Shown here one piece after another: positions 2,959 through 12,000 of a stretch of 64,000 nucleotides of DNA (position 1 is its first letter; every line of letters begins with the position of its first letter). Both the position numbers and the translations under genes were made by a program. The notes below the pieces were generated by a model. The model was not told the DNA's origin, ran no database searches, and saw only the letters and a list, made by a program, of their open reading frames with translations. This stretch comes from Entomortierella parvispora E1425 (Eukaryota; Fungi; Mortierellomycota): assembly GCA_020891255.1 (NCBI GenBank), contig BQFW01000002.1, forward strand, positions 1,922,001 through 1,986,000. Reading direction: 5' to 3'.

Positions 2959-4746
2959 ATGGACTCTCGACCGACCGCCTCATTCCCCACTGTGCGGGTG
3001 TCTGCCTCGGATGCACAGCCAAGACGAACCCCATTCTCGCCTAATGGGCGCGAGGGCAGGACATTGAAAACGCAACATTACAGCACCACACCCAAGACTG
3101 CTCCCAATCGAGAGTACTTTGACTTCATCCGCAAGGGAGGAATCACCCTGTCAGACCTGGAATCAACTCCAACTCCAGGACCAGTCGATAGTTTGGCATC
3201 CAGGGGGCCAGACAATAGTCGCACTAAAAACATTTCAGTAGAGGACCTCTCCACGCTTGAAAACGATGATCAAGAGGTTCAAGAACAGGGCCTAGACGCT
3301 CCCACGGACGAGCTGGACCGGATCCCCGTAAGCTCCAACATTATGGCGTTTGCAAGGAAATCCATTATGCAGCACGCAACAACGCAACCGCGATCCATCT
3401 TCAGTCGACTGAATGAAAAGAAACTCCAGGGCGCCAAACCAGCCTCTCTCGCAACTGCACAGCCATCACCAGCTGCTACAAATGCCCCTTCTAGTTCTCG
3501 AACGTGCGGACTAGAGAGACCCACTCTAAAGTCGACCACATCGCCTTTTGTATCTCGTCCAAACACATCCCCCACAGTTTTGACCGCTACCACCGTAAGC
3601 AGTAGCACGCCTTCGACTTTGACGAGGCCTGTATTAACACCAGCAGCTGCGCCAAAGCCGCCAATACCCGGCAGGAGTGTCCTCGATTTTTCTGGAGCAT
3701 CAGGATCGGCACTACTGAAGAAGAAGCCAATCAGTTTTGAACCACCCACAAGCGCGATAGCACCTCCGCCATCTATTATGGAGTCGGCAGTGCGGCACTC
3801 TGTGCCCTCAACGCTGCCGCCTGCAGCTTCAGAAGACACCAAAATGGACGATAATCCATCAGAAAAGACCAAGGAACAGAGTCAGGCAAAAACGGAAAAG
3901 GATCCATCCAACCCAGTTGCGTTTGACCTCCGAGCTTTGCTTCGTCAGGTACAGTGGTGCATTGGTTGATGGGGGTCGGTGTACAAACCATATGGCGCGA
4001 CATAACGTGCTAATGTCCATTTCTCGTGTTAGGACTCTGCAAGAGTACAATATCGTTTACCAAATCTTGTTGCGTCGCTGTCTCCACCTACCAGTCCGAA
4101 AAGACCCTCACCCTATGATATCCCTTCCTTGAAGGAACGCGAGGCCCTAAGAGCTCGGAGAATGCCGCGTTTCAAGGCTAGACCGCTGAATCCCAAAGTT
4201 TTCACGAGCGCTGGCGATCTAGGCGTGCCTAGGATCCCTAAGCAACCTCTGACCGTCCCGAAATCTCCGGTATTTAGCCGGACGAGGGTGAGACGCGACA
4301 TGATTTCAACACCAGGGCAGCCTCCTGCGACCCCTCGCACCAGTACTGCCGCACGACTACAGAGTGTACTGAGGGAGGGTGTGAAGCGATCACGGATAGT
4401 GGAAACAGCGGATAAGGGAACAAACTCTGCACAGACGTCATCATCGACTTTTGCAGCAGAGAGGAATCACCCCACGCAGTCATCGACAACGGCATGGTCA
4501 GGTCAACTCTCTGTCCCGTCTGTTGATCAAGTGCGTCTTATTCCAAAAACCCCTGTCGCGCCATCAGTCTCTTCCGCAGTCCGAAATACCCCACGGTCTT
4601 TTCCTCCTTCGAACCTTCGACGGCCCAATTCAACCAGGCCGGCGTTAACAAACCCCAGACCTTTTAAATTTGCTACTACCGAGTTGCAACGGAAGCGCAT
4701 GAAGGCGGCCAACTCCAACGCTTTGACATTGGCAGACTTGGCCTGA
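2959..4746 (+). CDS. Ser/Pro/Thr-rich protein with TPX2-like microtubule-binding motifs (2 exons)
   Basis: Exons 2959-3948 and 4033-4746 join in frame across GT..AG intron 3949-4032. Motif RFKARPLNPKVF...PLTVPKSPVF and C-terminal LTNPRPFKFAT resemble TPX2-family repeats. Confidence 0.6.
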
Positions 4747-5777
4747 TATGGGAAAACCGTTTCCCGAACGGAAAAGAATAAACAAAGTGTATATATTTTT
4801 GTATTTTATAACGCTATGGAGTCCAGCGAGCAGGTGCAATTCCAATTGGAGTTACCATAACAGACATTCTTTATCTTCAAGGTCAAGGAAGACACGAATA
4901 GGAAATATGCCACCGCTGTCCAGCATTCTGAACAGCACCCGTCGTGAGAAGACCACAGTTCCAAAGCCATGAACGTGAAAATCAGGATTGGCCTCAACCA
5001 CCAAGCCAACGCTGACAACAATCAAAACAAAAACTTGTGTGTTCGAGCTCATCATGGACCCGAGTGTTCCCAGGCCAAAACTCGGCTTCGTGTAACGCAA
5101 CGATTAAAAATCATAAATAACGAGGACGCCGAGATAGTCTTACGCCCGCTCTTTTTCACTTGGAAAGAACCAAGAAGAAAAACACTCGGACACAAAACCT
5201 GCCACATAGAAAAACGCCCGCAGGTACACTCTTCGGAAAAACGGCATAGCATGCTGCTCGTGAAAAAAGAAAGGGAGAGAGTCACTGGCAAACGATGGCA
5301 CTAAAAGAGAAGAGAGCAGAGCAGAGCAGTGATGACGGCGCCCGAGACAGGGGACAACAAGTAGAGACACAACAAACAGGGGGTCATTCACCATTGGATT
5401 TGTGCGACAGGAACAACAAACAATGAAAGGGGACAGCCATGGCGATAAACAAGAGACTGGACACGGGTAATGGTCCCAATCCTGCCCAGATATGAAGCGG
5501 ATGGGCGACCTTGGGTCGATTGCTTGTCCCCCTTCTTTCGTGTGTTCCGTTCCGTTCTTTCCTCTTTTTGTTTTCCTTCCCTCTTTCCTTCCGCATCCCT
5601 CCTCTCCTCTCCTTCTTCATCTCTTACCCTTACCCCTTCCTCTCTGGTGCCCTTTCTTGGCTGCCAATTGAGCCCCAATCTACCCCCATCCTTTTCTGTT
5701 ACAACCTCAGGCTTTTAGCCAAAACCTCACTCACTTAGGGAATATCTTTTCTCAGAACATCCCTCTTCGTTTCAACC

Positions 5778-8476
5778 ATGCTGTTCGTTTGGTTGGCCAT
5801 TGTGCTGCCTCCCACGCTCGTCTTTGCGTATGTCGCGCTCTCGGGCCTCTTTCTCTTGCTTCGCTCGGGTCTCCAAAACCCGCAGTCGCGTCTTGGACCT
5901 CTGTTGGTGGTCTTGATCATTGTGTCGGGATATCTTCTCTCCTTCCACCAAGCCTCGCGCTTTATCTGGAAGGATATGGTGGGTCCCTTTGTCTCTCAGA
6001 TCCTGCATCAATTGGGCACCATTGTTCTCGGCGCTGGACCCTCAACCGCGCCCGTGCTGTCGCCGACAACCGTCTTGTCTGAACAAAAGAATGACTGGCT
6101 TGGACCGAGCACTGCGGTCCTGCTGCCCATCATTGAGAAGGAGGCGCACTTGTCGCATCTTGTCGCGTTGTTTTTGGGCCTTTTCATGTCGTCGTATGTC
6201 ACGACCATGACCGATTCGCTCAAGAAGAGACAGATTCCCCAGTACATGTAAGAGCAAATAGAGAATGAGATGACCTCGATGAGCATTATGCATCTCATGC
6301 TTAGTTCTGTGTTTCTTGCACCACCACTGGTACCACAGCACCAGTACTACTGTCGCCACCATTTGTGTTTTTTTTTTTTTTTTTTTTCGATCTGACATAT
6401 CCCCTTTCTTTTATTTTTCTTTTGTTTGTCTGTCCATTTGTCTGAAGGTACTCGTTCGCGGACACGTCCTTCCGTATCGTTCTCAGTCTCGAGTTCTATC
6501 TCGGCACGGTCCTCTGGTTCCGCTTCTGCCTGGCGCCTGTCCTGGCCCACCTGGGACTGACCGCGTCGCGTGAGAGCAACATCGCGTGGATGGGGACCTT
6601 GGTTCTCGGGTTCTCGCACACGACCGCGTTTGCGTTTGGCAACTTTTTGTACCAAGACTACTATCGACGGGGCTTTGACAAGAAGCCCGAGTACGCGTTC
6701 ATCAAGTACTATTCGATCTATGGATCCATCTTTGTTGCTGGCAGAATGGCCAGCCAAGTTCTCTGTCAGATAAAAAGTAAGTAGCATCCTAATCTTTTTG
6801 TCCAATGTTCCTGTGGGACTCTTGTTATTCTTGCCTCTTACCGTTCATTACCATTTGCCTATTATGTCCAGCTTGCACGCGCGACGGCGAGGCCTTGCTT
6901 ATGCTTGCCATCTACTTTTTGGCTTTTCTTCATGTCACGATCGAGAACGAGACCTTCCATGTAAGTCCTATTTGCTCTTGGCCTAGACCCAAAAGTGAAC
7001 AGACGCAACAACAACAACAAAACGCGACTGCACAGACCTGCATTGGTCTGTTGCAAAAGTGCAACCAAAAAAAACATCCATTGACTTTCCTTCCCCCTTA
7101 CTTTTTAGAACGTGATCTGGCCCTTGATGACAGTTGGAAGTTTCGCTGTCTTTTTCTTGGACGCCTACCTTAAGCCCATCTTTGCCAGTATGGCCTCGGC
7201 CTTGATGGTCCCTTTGACTACTACCCCACCTCTCCTGCTCGTTATTTTCTCCAGCATCTTGGGCGCCAGCGCTGTTCGCTTCATGCAGGCCAGCCCTAGA
7301 CCCGAGATGGCTCCTGTCTTTGAGCAAATCCATGACCAGAAACGTCGCGCCAATCAATTCCCTCCCCCTTTCCCCAATGGATGGTACAAGCTTGCTCGTT
7401 CCGCCGAATTGAAGCCAGGTCAGGTCATCAACGTCAATGGACTTGGCCGTTCGTTTGCTGTGTTCAGAGGCGAGGTGGACGAGGAGATTCATGTCTTGGA
7501 CGCTCTCTGCCCCCATCTCGGAGCCAACATGGCCATTGGAGGTGTTGTGGAGGGTGACGCGGTCAAGTGTCCCTTCCACGGATGGAAGTTTGATGGCAAG
7601 GGACATTGCATTGATATTCCGTATGCCAAGAGCATCCCCAGTCTTGCTCGTACGAAACGATGGACTCACAGAGAATACGCGGGTATTATTGTGATTTGGT
7701 ACGATGCTGAGGAGCGTGAACCCATGTACGAACCGGTTCCGTTCCCGTTGGCTGAAGGAACGTTCAGACGCATCGGACACCGTCGCGGAACATTGCCCAT
7801 GCACATTCAGGACTTTGCTGAAAATGCATCCGACTGGTAAAAATCTCTTTCAACGCGCTTGAAGATTTTTTGGATCATTTCTTCTTGGTCATCGCTTTGC
7901 TAACAGTTGGCGTTTACAAATTGTTTTCTGTCAAATAGGATGCACTTCAGTCTTTTGCACGACCGCTTGTCGATCCCGATCCTGGATCGATTCTTTTACA
8001 TCAAACACAAGACAAAGTGCGACTATGATCCAGAGACCAACCCTTTCAACTTCGTGTTCAATGACTACCCGACCGTGCACTCAATCTTTAGCGATGAGCC
8101 GATCCAGTCCGCCGAGGCGGTGGCGCGGGTGGAGTTTACGGGACCGGGTGGTCTTGTGTACTTCCGCTTCTTCACCCCCGCAGGTCAAGTTGTGGTCATA
8201 AAGTCGTTCTTGCCTGTGGGTGAAAAGGGACTGCAGCTGACGATGGAAGACGAGGCGTTTGCGGAGAAGAGTGTTCCCTGGCTCGCGGCCAAGCACATCA
8301 TCCGCGAGGCGAACAAGGCGTTTGACGACGACATCTTTGTGTGGCGCCACAAGACGTACAAGCACAAGCCGGTGTTTGTGAAGGAGGACGCGCCCGTGAA
8401 GCAGTTCCGCGACTATTACAAAAAGTTTTACTCGCCCAACAGCCGCACGTACGCCCATGATCAACTGGACTGGTAA
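5778..8476 (+). CDS. nvd: Rieske non-heme iron oxygenase, Neverland/DAF-36 (cholesterol 7-desaturase)-like, with polytopic N-terminal domain
   Basis: Five exons 5778-6247, 6448-6776, 6872-6960, 7109-7836, 7939-8476 splice in frame (2154 nt, 717 aa). Rieske CPHLGA...CPFHGW; PPPFPNGWY; mononuclear Fe motif ENASDWMHFSLLH spans the last intron; ends LDW. Confidence 0.85.
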
Positions 8477-9040
8477 GTCCGGGATGGTCCTCTCCTTCCT
8501 TTCGTGCTATGATTCTTTTTGTGGCATACATAGGCGATTCGATGGATGTCTCTTTTATTTGCTTGATGTGGACAGTGTTGAGTCGTGTCCCATGCTATCA
8601 TTCCTTCTTGACCCTTGTCTGCTCGTTGTGCTGGCCGGTCTGTCTTCTTCAAGGTCAGACGCTGTTATTGAATTCACAAGTAATAAAAGAACAAAAAAAA
8701 AAAAAAAAAAAAAAACGCGACATCCCCAACCGCCCATCCATCCAATCCAACCCTTTCAACAGTCACCGCTCTTTTTGTGCGCGTGTCTTAATACTCCATG
8801 TGACAAATAGGGACATGCATCATTATTCTTTTCCTCTTCTTCTTCTTCTTCTTTCATCACTACATCTTTCTTTTGTCGTCCATCCACACGACACGACTCA
8901 CTGCGCTCAGGGGACCATAGAGAGAGACTGACCCCTCTACTGACACTACCGACAGGGACCCACAGGAATCCCGCAGGAGCACAGTCAGAACTACCATCCC
9001 CGCGAGCTCTCATTCTCATTCTCAAGGAAGCCCATCGTCC

Positions 9041-12000
9041 ATGCAGAACCAGCCAAGGCGACAGCCGCCTCCTCAACAGCGGATGAACGTCCCGCCTCCA
9101 CCGGGACATGGACCTCCACCACCCCAGGGACAGTACATGCGCCAAGGACCACCTCCTCCTCGCCCAATGGGACCTGGCCCTGGCATGTATCCACCCAACA
9201 TGCAGCAAGGCATGAGCAACTACCCACCGCCCAATATGCCTCCCAACATGCGACCCCGTCCACCTTCCAACATGATGCCCATGGGCAGCCAGATGAACAT
9301 GAACGGACAGCGACATCAGATGAGCGGACCCATACCTCCTATGGGCGGCCAAATGCGTCCAATGGGCATGGGTGGTCCTCCACCCATGGGCCGACACGGC
9401 ACGGTAAACATGGGACCTCCCATGGGCCCCCCTCGACCCAACCATGTCATCTCTGGATTCAGGGCCCCGCCACCGCCAGGACAGGGACCAGGCATGGGAC
9501 CAGGATCCGGCTCCTCTGGCAGTTCGGCGCACTCGGCACCCTTGTCTATCTACGGAGGCATTGGCACGCCCACCAACGGCCCTGGATCCACACCCGCGTA
9601 CCCACCGGTGCCTGCGCCCATGGCCCCTGTCAACTACCAGCCAAAGACCTCACACGGCGCTTCGCCGGTCAGTCGCACCATCACCTCTTCTCCAAGCCCG
9701 ATACCAGGATCTGGACCCTCTCCTTCTGGACCCCCAGCTCCGATCCCGCCCAAGGCATTGCGTCGTGAAAATTCTTCTCCCCGCAAGGATTCGACTTCGA
9801 GCACAGGGCGCAAGGAAACGCCATCGCCACAGGTCAGGAATGAACAGCCTTCTTTGCCATCGCCTGTGATTCGAAAGGAAGTGCCAGGACCACCACCCCC
9901 TCAACCCTCTTCGACATCGACCCCTATCCCTCGACCTCCAATGAGGAGAGATACGTCGTCCTCCTTGAAGTCACAAAAGGATGCACCTCTGCCATCGCCT
10001 ACCTTGAAGAAGGAGGTCCCGGTTCCTCAACGCAAGGAAACGCCACCGCAGCCAATGAATCAACAACCTCTGCGAAAGAACCTCATCTCAGTGTCGTCCC
10101 CCTCTATGAGCTCTCCTCTTGTGTCAGGTCGGCCACCGGTCGTGGAAGTCGCCCAGTTTGGTCGGGAGGGATTTAACCATGAGGATTGTAAGACTATGAC
10201 TCGACAAAGAGCTGGAAGTCGACATGTTGATATTTTCATGAACAAGCGTACTAAACACCAAATTACCTCTTTTTTTTTTCCGACAGATTTGACTCAAAAT
10301 TTGGCCAACGCCAGCGAGGAAACCATCCGAGCATTCCTGCAGTCTCTAAAAGACTCCAAGTCGATGGCGGCTGGAGATCTTCAGGACAATGTCTTCAAGA
10401 ACTACAACGAATTCGTGACGATTTCAAAGGAGATTTCAAAGCTCGAGAGTGACATGCAGACATTACGAGGACTCTTGGATGATCTCAAAACGGCGAGTGA
10501 TAACCTTCAGGATGACGACGACGAGTTTTTGTTGACAGCTGGTAAGAGATATTGGAATTGAAAGGAACGAGCATCCGTGGTATGGACATTCTAACAAATG
10601 TTAGCCAATTAATTACTCATTTTTCCATTTTTTTTTTTTTTGTTATTTACGTAGGTATTGAGGATTCCGCGCCTGTGGTTCCTAAGCGTATGACCGTTAT
10701 GGTGTCCAGCATGTCGGATCTGACCTCAGTCTGGAAGGCACAAATGATGGCTCTGTGGGAGGGTATTGAAGGCGCACAGGTACTTATTCGAGAGATGCAC
10801 AGAGTACTACAAATGTTCAGTTGCGTTTTGATGAACTCACTCTTCCTGGTTTCCTTGCGTAGAAAATGTTGCCATATCACTCGAAACGCCACTTGATTCG
10901 AGAATCACCCAGTTTTGTAGAAGTGAACATGTCAACCAACAAGATCAAGCACCCTGTTCACATTGTGCTTATGAACGATACCCTTTTGGTGGCTACACGC
11001 AAGAAGAAGACTGCGGCCCATTCAAAATTCAAGCTGTTGGGAGACCGGTGTTGGCCGCTGACCGAAATTACGATCGAGGACATGAAGGATACCGCTGGTA
11101 CGTCTCCTGAGCAGATGTGTCCTTATGGGTCGATGATTCATTTGAGGCACCGTTTGACCAAAAACCTCTTTTTTTTATCTTGTCGGATATAGATATCAGA
11201 AACGCAATCAAGATCACACATGGCACAGAGGTGTTTGTGTACAAAACAGAGAAGGGCCAGGAGAAGCAGACAATGCTGGTGAATGCCAAGCGTTCGACGG
11301 AAGAAATGTTGGCCCGTACAAACGAGTCTCGCAACAAGGGAGGCATGTTTGGTTTTGCGCCTGCGATGCCTAATCGCGCTGGCATGCCTTTCAGAACCTC
11401 AGTCGGATCGAACCAGACCGATACCCGTTGGTTGGCAGAGTTCACAGATGAGCTGGACGTTCTAATTGCTCAACATGACTTCGATGGCGCTGTAACAGGG
11501 ATTGAAAAGGGTAAGGCAATGGTCGTCTGCCTCTTTGTTTGTTTTTCCATCAAGAATTGCTCAAGCCAATGCTTGATATTAATATGGACTGTATTTTCTA
11601 GCAACGGTGATGCTGTCGCAGATGACAACATTGCCCGCCACCAAAAAGGAAGAGACTCGTAAGCGACTGGATGAGCGTGTCTCTCGCTTGTCACGCGCCA
11701 TCCTTATGAACCTTGGACAGGCGCACATTACAAAGTTGGCAGTGCAACGAGATGTGGGCTGGCTTGAGCGACTCGGCTGCCTGGATCAGGCTAGAGATGT
11801 ATTCTTGGGTAACAGGACAAAGGTTATTCGCAGCAGAACAAGGTAATGATCAGATGGACGGAGACAGCCTTAGACAATATGGGGCCAGACTAACAAACTC
11901 GACATATCCTCTTCTTGCCAATATAGCCAAGTAAAGCCAAAGAGGGATCCTGCAGTCCATGTCGAAGAACTTGCAATGATTGTGTTTACATCAATCAAGA

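Follow-up and report, generated by a model that had tools for sequence, protein, structure and literature searches.

A Neverland-like Rieske oxygenase with a long predicted membrane N-terminus in Entomortierella parvispora and other Mortierellaceae

A stretch of 64,000 nucleotides from the fungus Entomortierella parvispora E1425 (contig BQFW01000002.1, positions 1,922,001 to 1,986,000; hereafter the window) carries on its forward strand, at 5778-8476, a Mortierellaceae gene of five exons that is, by comparison with its relatives, intact and subject to purifying selection. Its predicted product is an integral membrane protein of 717 residues, in which an N-terminal polytopic domain is fused to a Neverland-like, KshA-type Rieske non-haem-iron oxygenase. 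By its placement in phylogenetic trees, the gene is a Neverland-like paralogue and not an orthologue of Neverland; it belongs to a sister subfamily (clade X) whose members come from chytrids, Mortierellaceae and several groups of protists. Our best guess for the chemistry, drawn by analogy and held with somewhat less than even confidence, is the C7(8) desaturation of Delta5 sterols.

Catalytic half and gene structure

The catalytic half is recognisable from four motifs quoted in an earlier sequence-only reading of this DNA (CPH..CPFH, PPPFPNGWY, the ENASD region and a terminal LDW). All four lie on the forward strand, in agreement with Pfam matches to the Rieske domain (PF00355 in 7109-7837, E 3.2e-22) and to KshA_C (PF19298 in 7940-8473, E 3.2e-11, 44 bits against a cut-off of 23.3). 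PPPFPNGWY is encoded at 7361-7387 and the Rieske motif, C430-P-H432-X17-C450-P-F-H453, at 7508-7579; its four cluster ligands are invariant in the alignment of long forms (A5). ENASD (7820-7834), followed by W and MHFSLLH, belongs to the Fe(II) motif E534-N-A-S-D538-W-M-H541-F-S-L-L-H546, the residues of which are likewise invariant in A5. The two halves of this motif join into one unbroken stretch only once a 102-nt GT-AG intron (7837-7938) is taken out. The third iron ligand, Asp670, lies in FDDDIFVW (8321-8344) and aligns with KshA FEQD(I/V)EIW, while QLDW (8462-8473) forms the C-terminal end ahead of the stop codon TAA at 8474-8476. As read from these alignments, all Rieske and Fe(II) ligands are kept (C430, H432, C450 and H453; H541, H546 and D670), together with the motif residues E534 and D538. 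Both published Neverland motifs, C-X-H-X16-17-C-X2-H and E/D-X3-D-X2-H-X4-H (PMC7609953), occur in the fungal protein, as does the KshA_C-type domain with Asp as third iron ligand that is expected of a Neverland protein.

The exon borders were compared with a related contig from the Logan assembly (L001), which has 73-100% amino-acid identity per exon. The window and L001 have five coding blocks in common, separated by unalignable stretches, and together these amount to 717 codons plus stop. Every exon border is canonical GT-AG, and splice sites and phases are kept in L001. The ratio of nonsynonymous to synonymous substitution rates (dN/dS) lies at 0.02-0.09 across the exons, with synonymous sites close to saturation.

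Exon 1 (5778..6247) encodes the beginning of the N-terminal domain, runs from ATG 5778 to the donor AT/GTAAGA and ends in phase 2. The ATG and the coding conservation with L001 begin together at 5778, similarity is gone upstream, and dN/dS is 0.076. Exon 2 (6448..6776) holds the most conserved part of the N-terminal domain, with 84% identity to L001 and a dN/dS of 0.070; its acceptor AG/G and donor A/GTAAGT are both kept in L001, from which the in-frame stop found just past this donor in the window is absent. Exon 3 (6872..6960) is only 89 nt long and encodes a transmembrane segment with the motif FLHVTIENETFH. It shows 100% amino-acid identity with L001 over 29-32 residues while the introns on both sides are unalignable, and a Thr codon is split by the exon 2/3 junction in both sequences. 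Across Mortierellaceae the 29 residues of exon 3 are 82-100% identical, conserved well above the remaining protein; a BLASTP search with this exon gave no chytrid match. Exon 4 (7109..7836) carries PF00355, matches KshA with E 4.5e-27 and has the acceptor TTTTTAG, kept in L001. The following intron 4 (7837..7938, GTAAAA...AATAG) splits the Trp539 codon within the mononuclear-iron motif; L001 similarity blocks end at 7840 and resume at 7937, with none between. Exon 5 (7939..8476) encodes the KshA_C catalytic domain with H541, H546, Asp670 and the C-terminal LDW, and is 89% identical to L001 at the amino-acid level (dN/dS 0.060).

The exon pieces tile annotated Mortierellaceae proteins of 710-736 residues without gaps, save one residue per split codon. 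On the annotated Mortierella antarctica orthologue (P0200, 71-89% identical per exon), which took the place of the full-length protein in folding and in the PDB search, the pieces cover residues 1-163, 165-273, 275-303, 304-546 and 548-725. Exons 1-3 are included by independent gene predictions in relatives. Several NCBI models from Mortierellaceae (P0047, P0196, P0197, P0211, P0213 and P0218) have a truncated N-terminus or miss part of exon 4, and such annotation errors conceal the long-form architecture.

The sequence-only reading had placed the gene at 7109-8476. That interval does hold the last two of the five exons, but position 7109 is an internal exon start after an acceptor, and the protein has 717 residues rather than some 420, because the coding exons at 5778-6247, 6448-6776 and 6872-6960 lie upstream. 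Two later ATG codons were considered as starts and rejected. Met 7127 is not the start codon because it is Ile in L001, and for 7127 as for ATG 6805 the coding conservation and the kept splice phases reach up to ATG 5778. An antisense open reading frame at 6983-7804 (273 residues) is taken as a shadow of the coding strand, because conservation and family matches sit on the forward strand. Long homopolymer runs of A and of T occur in intron 1 (6365-6395) and in the 3' flank (8690-8716).

The N-terminal membrane domain

Residues 1 to about 380, ahead of the Rieske domain, are predicted to form a polytopic membrane domain of some 9-10 helices, which the sequence-only reading overlooked and which matches no recognised family. 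Two SH motifs stand out. LSHLVALFLG (S126-H127) is encoded at 6150..6179 and is seen in alignments A4 and A5, where the pair (S133-H134 in P0200 numbering) is at least 90% conserved; H127 is almost invariant throughout the fungal and protist long forms. The second, LxxSHxxAFxxGxF..D...R, lies at 6605-6670. Exon 2 contains the motifs FYLGTVLWFRF and LGFSHTTAFAFGNFLYQDYYRR, with H214 invariant and F218, G221, D227 and R231 conserved. The near-invariant residues of the domain include, in window numbering, P11, S126-H127, W180, S213-H214, F218, G221, D227 and R231.

A hidden Markov model (HMM) built from fungal N-termini matches chytrids, Diphylleia rotans, two transcriptome proteins (GILK/GILJ) and several metagenome proteins, and among the protist long forms P0062/P0195, P0143, P0222, P0055, P0051 and P0059. 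BLASTP and HMM matches of exon 2 likewise extend to chytrid and protist long forms. The domain was seen only fused to the Rieske/KshA_C oxygenase, and a profile word search turned up no separate copy. Pfam has no family for it, whether queried with the exon pieces, nine full-length long forms or 28 aligned N-termini; NCBIfam gave nothing useful, and an ESM Atlas feature search no usable match.

In the AlphaFold model of the orthologue, the domain has a mean predicted local distance difference test score (pLDDT) of 68, with core residues 120-260 at 75-89. Foldseek found no PDB match for the domain with E <0.3, and an Atlas shape search reached template-modelling (TM) scores of at most 0.23. The best hit of the VIA wide fold search was one lobe of a MATE/MurJ transporter at Z 8.3, which is within helical-bundle noise.

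Four clade X proteins from Leptophrys vorax and metagenomes (P0056, P0076, P0081 and P0160; 683-745 residues) also carry N-terminal extensions, of about 330-380 residues. Unlike the chytrid and Diphylleia N-termini, these have no detectable similarity to the fungal domain. They may have arisen separately as another extension, or may be the fungal domain in strongly diverged form.

Relatives, phylogenetic position and locus

An exhaustive HMMER search of 1.84 billion representatives returned 217 proteins at E <=1e-30. The closest named matches are from Mortierellaceae (Mortierella, Podila, Linnemannia, Entomortierella, Actinomortierella, Dissophora, Gamsiella and Haplosporangium), and this list of orthologues points to a Mortierella-type host, in line with the earlier statement that the gene sits in a fungus. 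About 25 genomes of Mortierellaceae hold orthologues of the same length. NCBI names all of these "hypothetical protein", and the gene is already in public databases under that label. Haplosporangium sp. Z 767 has two distinct copies, P0198 and P0201 (715 and 725 residues; 73% and 67% identical to P0047). The next closest proteins are from the chytrids Phlyctochytrium, Blyttiomyces, Dinochytrium, Chytridium lagenaria, Terramyces and Boothiomyces. Of the named matches of this search, none came from Dikarya, Mucorales or Glomeromycotina, which is not an exhaustive test of absence.

The nearest proteins with a name of their own are insect and lizard "cholesterol 7-desaturase nvd", with 42-45% identity over the Rieske part and about 30% across the whole catalytic core; the nearest ESM Atlas cluster is likewise named cholesterol 7-desaturase nvd. 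Neverland/DAF-36 proteins, a family reported also from Salpingoeca, Capsaspora and Tetrahymena (Des7p), share with the fungal protein the Rieske and Fe(II) motifs, KshA_C, the HIQ(D/E)..EN signature, the C-terminal Trp and an N-terminal membrane anchor. In Neverland, however, that anchor is a single helix in place of the polytopic domain of about 380 residues. KshA is the top PDB match by sequence (E 1e-34) and the top fold match of the orthologue model (Foldseek E 1.5e-19, TM about 0.7 by target), followed by SxtT/GxtA and guaiacol demethylase. All metal ligands align with KshA (PDB 4qdc, 2zyl), including the Asp in F(E/D)xD(I/V)xxW, but at about 23% identity; KshA is a soluble bacterial enzyme of about 390 residues that hydroxylates 3-ketosteroids with the reductase KshB.

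The closest architectural counterparts are the long forms of clade X, for example Phlyctochytrium KAJ3095791.1, Boothiomyces KAJ3253517.1 and transcripts of Diphylleia rotans and Sphaerothecum destruens, with 560-870 residues and Rieske plus KshA_C at the C-terminus. The protist long forms derive from transcriptome open reading frames flagged complete. The HIQ(D/E)..EN signature and the C-terminal Trp are common to the eukaryotic proteins (92 of 117 tree rows, mostly eukaryotic), whereas the four open reading frames from bacterial genomes have no C-terminal Trp.

The phylogenetic position was taken from a careful maximum-likelihood tree of 66 rows and 356 columns (LG+C20, rooted on three proteobacterial rows), in which the window entered as two separate rows, exon 4 and exon 5; Tetrahymena Des7p, Capsaspora CAOG_04775, the Naegleria enzyme and KshA itself are not among the rows. 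Mortierellaceae are recovered with support of 100/100, Mortierellaceae with Chytridiales-type chytrids with 100/99 and all fungi with 97/92. Clade X, which unites the fungi with the protist long forms of Diphylleia, Sphaerothecum, Prymnesium and Leptophrys, has support of 93/99, and in a 125-row tree Ectocarpus joined it. A separate Nvd clade (96/92) holds animal Nvd, Salpingoeca, Abeoforma, Gocevia and Rhodelphis. Both eukaryotic clades group together, apart from the bacterial KshA-like rows, with 87/75. An approximately unbiased (AU) test rejected the fungi and the holozoan Nvd core as one clade (98 log-likelihood units worse, p 9e-5), the constrained group having been picked after the tree was inspected. 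Of two ichthyosporeans, one (Sphaerothecum) belongs to clade X and the other (Abeoforma) to the Nvd clade, a pattern that suggests an old duplication and paralogy.

It is on this tree placement and on the AU rejection that we regard the fungal protein as Neverland-like but no orthologue. The assignment to the Neverland/DAF-36-like family proposed from sequence alone consequently holds for broad kinship, in identity and in the two intact Nvd motifs, but not for orthology. The fungal protein groups outside the clade of animal Nvd, and in place of the short anchor and the total of about 400-490 residues expected of Neverland (353-490 among the Nvd-clade rows) it has 717 residues, some 380 of them polytopic. 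Nor does it agree with a KshA, for it is predicted to be membrane-bound, is eukaryotic and stands apart from the bacterial rows. It does have the features that mark clade X, an N-terminal polytopic domain with two SH motifs fused to Rieske and KshA_C.

Within the fungi, the Rhizophydiales chytrids (Boothiomyces and Terramyces) fall outside the pair formed by Mortierellaceae and Chytridiales-type chytrids (P0193/P0050 versus P0049/P0219/P0221), in conflict with the species tree. This conflict may reflect old paralogy, a rate artefact or an ancient transfer from chytrids to Mortierellaceae.

The gene is flanked upstream by a TPX2-importin-like gene (4129-4746), a neighbour that it also has upstream in L001, and downstream by a multi-exon Exo84 gene (9041-11662), the product of which has a long proline-rich N-terminus. 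Because these are the neighbours, a sterol gene cluster at this locus was rejected.

Possible function and its alternatives

Ergosterol is missing from Mortierellales, where desmosterol and related Delta5 sterols build up (PMC2878339); ERG2, ERG4 and ERG5 have been lost from them, and DHCR7 is kept (PMC10629195). Sterol C7 desaturation is the activity described for the Neverland family in animals and Tetrahymena (PMC4967820, PMC9485055), and across the cited papers it is the only eukaryotic activity of the family. The Rieske C7-desaturase was described in 2016 as "absent in fungi", without orthologues there (PMC4967820). Two recent genomic reviews that cover lipid and sterol genes of Mucoromycota and early-diverging fungi (PMC10629195, PMC9457484) leave the enzyme unmentioned, the latter discussing DHCR7. 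Our literature search found no paper that describes a fungal form or ties a Rieske enzyme to sterols in Mortierella, and for Rieske, sterol and Chytridiomycota combined it returned just PMC4967820 and one unrelated paper.

By analogy with KshA and Rieske oxygenases in general, the [2Fe-2S] cluster would be reduced by an external reductase. It would hand the electron on to the mononuclear iron of a neighbouring subunit, where O2 would be activated to abstract hydrogen from the bound sterol. If the fungal protein is a C7(8) desaturase, its substrates in Mortierellaceae would be desmosterol or 24-methylene-cholesterol, giving 5,7-dienes. Such a reaction would run opposite to the DHCR7 step and might serve a minor or regulated pool of sterols, or sterols imported from the surroundings. 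The membrane domain would most plausibly serve as an anchor in the endoplasmic reticulum that hands membrane sterol to the enzyme; alternatively, the conserved H127 and H214 may bind a cofactor. The alternative sterol-remodelling route put forward in the sequence-only reading is a reasonable hypothesis and not a result.

Several points weigh against C7 desaturation or limit the reading as a whole. No named member of clade X has a measured activity, so that C7 desaturation is assigned by analogy. The AU test rejects orthology with animal Nvd, and function is therefore transferred between sides of an ancient divergence, where the catalytic cores are 30-45% identical. Residues near the iron, as aligned, differ systematically between clade X and the Nvd clade, with MHIQDFAEN..D..HF in the fungal clade against HIQE[VI]PENGAD.AHL in Nvd. 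Next to DHCR7, a 7-desaturase would seem futile, barring regulation or a separate compartment. A search for RNA sequencing runs over 5600-8800 listed none, and splicing is deduced from comparative evidence only. The role given to the N-terminal domain is pure inference, as its model is of moderate quality and the folds matched do not exceed the noise level.

A different sterol or steroid oxidation is the strongest alternative, although we consider it doubtful. The reaction could be a hydroxylation of the nucleus (C9-alpha in KshA) or an oxidation of a methyl group or the side chain, serving catabolism, signalling or detoxification. KshA is the closest solved structure by both sequence and fold, the first His ligand is followed by Phe, a feature of KshA and the bacterial rows that animal Nvd does not share, and the fungal protein lies outside the sole labelled clade with proven desaturases. 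Among NCBIfam models, one for a bacterial 4-beta-methylsterol monooxygenase matches the Rieske part best, though far under its cut-off (57 against 600 bits). That the eukaryotic clades form a group to which the bacterial KshA-like rows do not belong points the other way, as do the HIQ(D/E)..EN signature and C-terminal Trp, which these clades have in common and which are absent from the bacterial rows, and the lack of steroid-catabolic genes among the two neighbours. Rather improbable is a non-sterol membrane lipid or aromatic substrate, bound or transported by the N-terminal domain. Rieske oxygenases are chemically diverse, the structural matches next to KshA are SxtT/GxtA and guaiacol demethylase, some arthropod Neverland paralogues may act on non-sterols according to a 2025 preprint (10.1101/2025.04.14.648839), and the N-terminal core weakly resembles the MATE/MurJ lobe. 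That resemblance nevertheless falls within noise, each characterised relative with a KshA_C domain that we encountered acts on steroids, and the host fungi are those with cholesterol-type sterols.

The other two alternatives concern the origin and the state of the gene. That it is a plain Neverland/DAF-36 orthologue inherited from the opisthokont ancestor, with the tree misled by rate differences, appears very improbable. Its best named BLAST and HMMER matches are animal Nvd, and UniRef automatically names two fungal proteins, from Podila and Boothiomyces, "cholesterol 7-desaturase". Against this stand the likelihood deficit of the one-clade constraint (for a group chosen post hoc), the two ichthyosporeans on opposite sides of the split, and the absence of the N-terminal domain from the 400-490-residue proteins of the Nvd clade. 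We give hardly any credence to a non-working gene, be it a contaminant, a recent transfer, a decaying pseudogene or a model in which exons 1-3 belong to another gene. In its favour, the search for RNA runs came back empty, and the nesting of Mortierellaceae beside Chytridiales-type chytrids leaves room for an old transfer. The introns, however, are of fungal type, the locus lies between the TPX2-like and Exo84 genes with the former shared by L001, orthologues of the same length are widespread in the family, purifying selection is strong on all five exons, exons 1-3 are part of the independently predicted genes of relatives, and the protist long forms come from transcriptome frames flagged complete.

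A wider extension of the desaturase reading is conceivable, although as a whole we think it unlikely. Clade X would then be an ancient eukaryotic paralogue of Neverland, the N-terminal domain a new module for sterol handling or electron delivery, and the fusion a self-contained membrane sterol desaturase. Fungi would have retained it only where cholesterol-type sterols occur, in chytrids and Mortierellaceae, and there it would reverse the DHCR7 step on demand, yielding 5,7-dienes of the provitamin D type or precursors of steroid signals.

For the family, the finding means that Neverland-like oxygenases do occur in two early-diverging groups of fungi, which contradicts their published absence (PMC4967820), and that the fungal proteins belong to a long-form subfamily, so far undescribed, with members across eukaryotes. 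If the enzyme is a Delta5-sterol desaturase, the sterol pathways of Mortierella, an industrial lipid producer, would gain a step, and 7-dehydro-sterols (provitamin D3-type compounds) would become accessible by a microbial route. The enzyme would also give a first handle on the orphan membrane domain that always accompanies this oxygenase.

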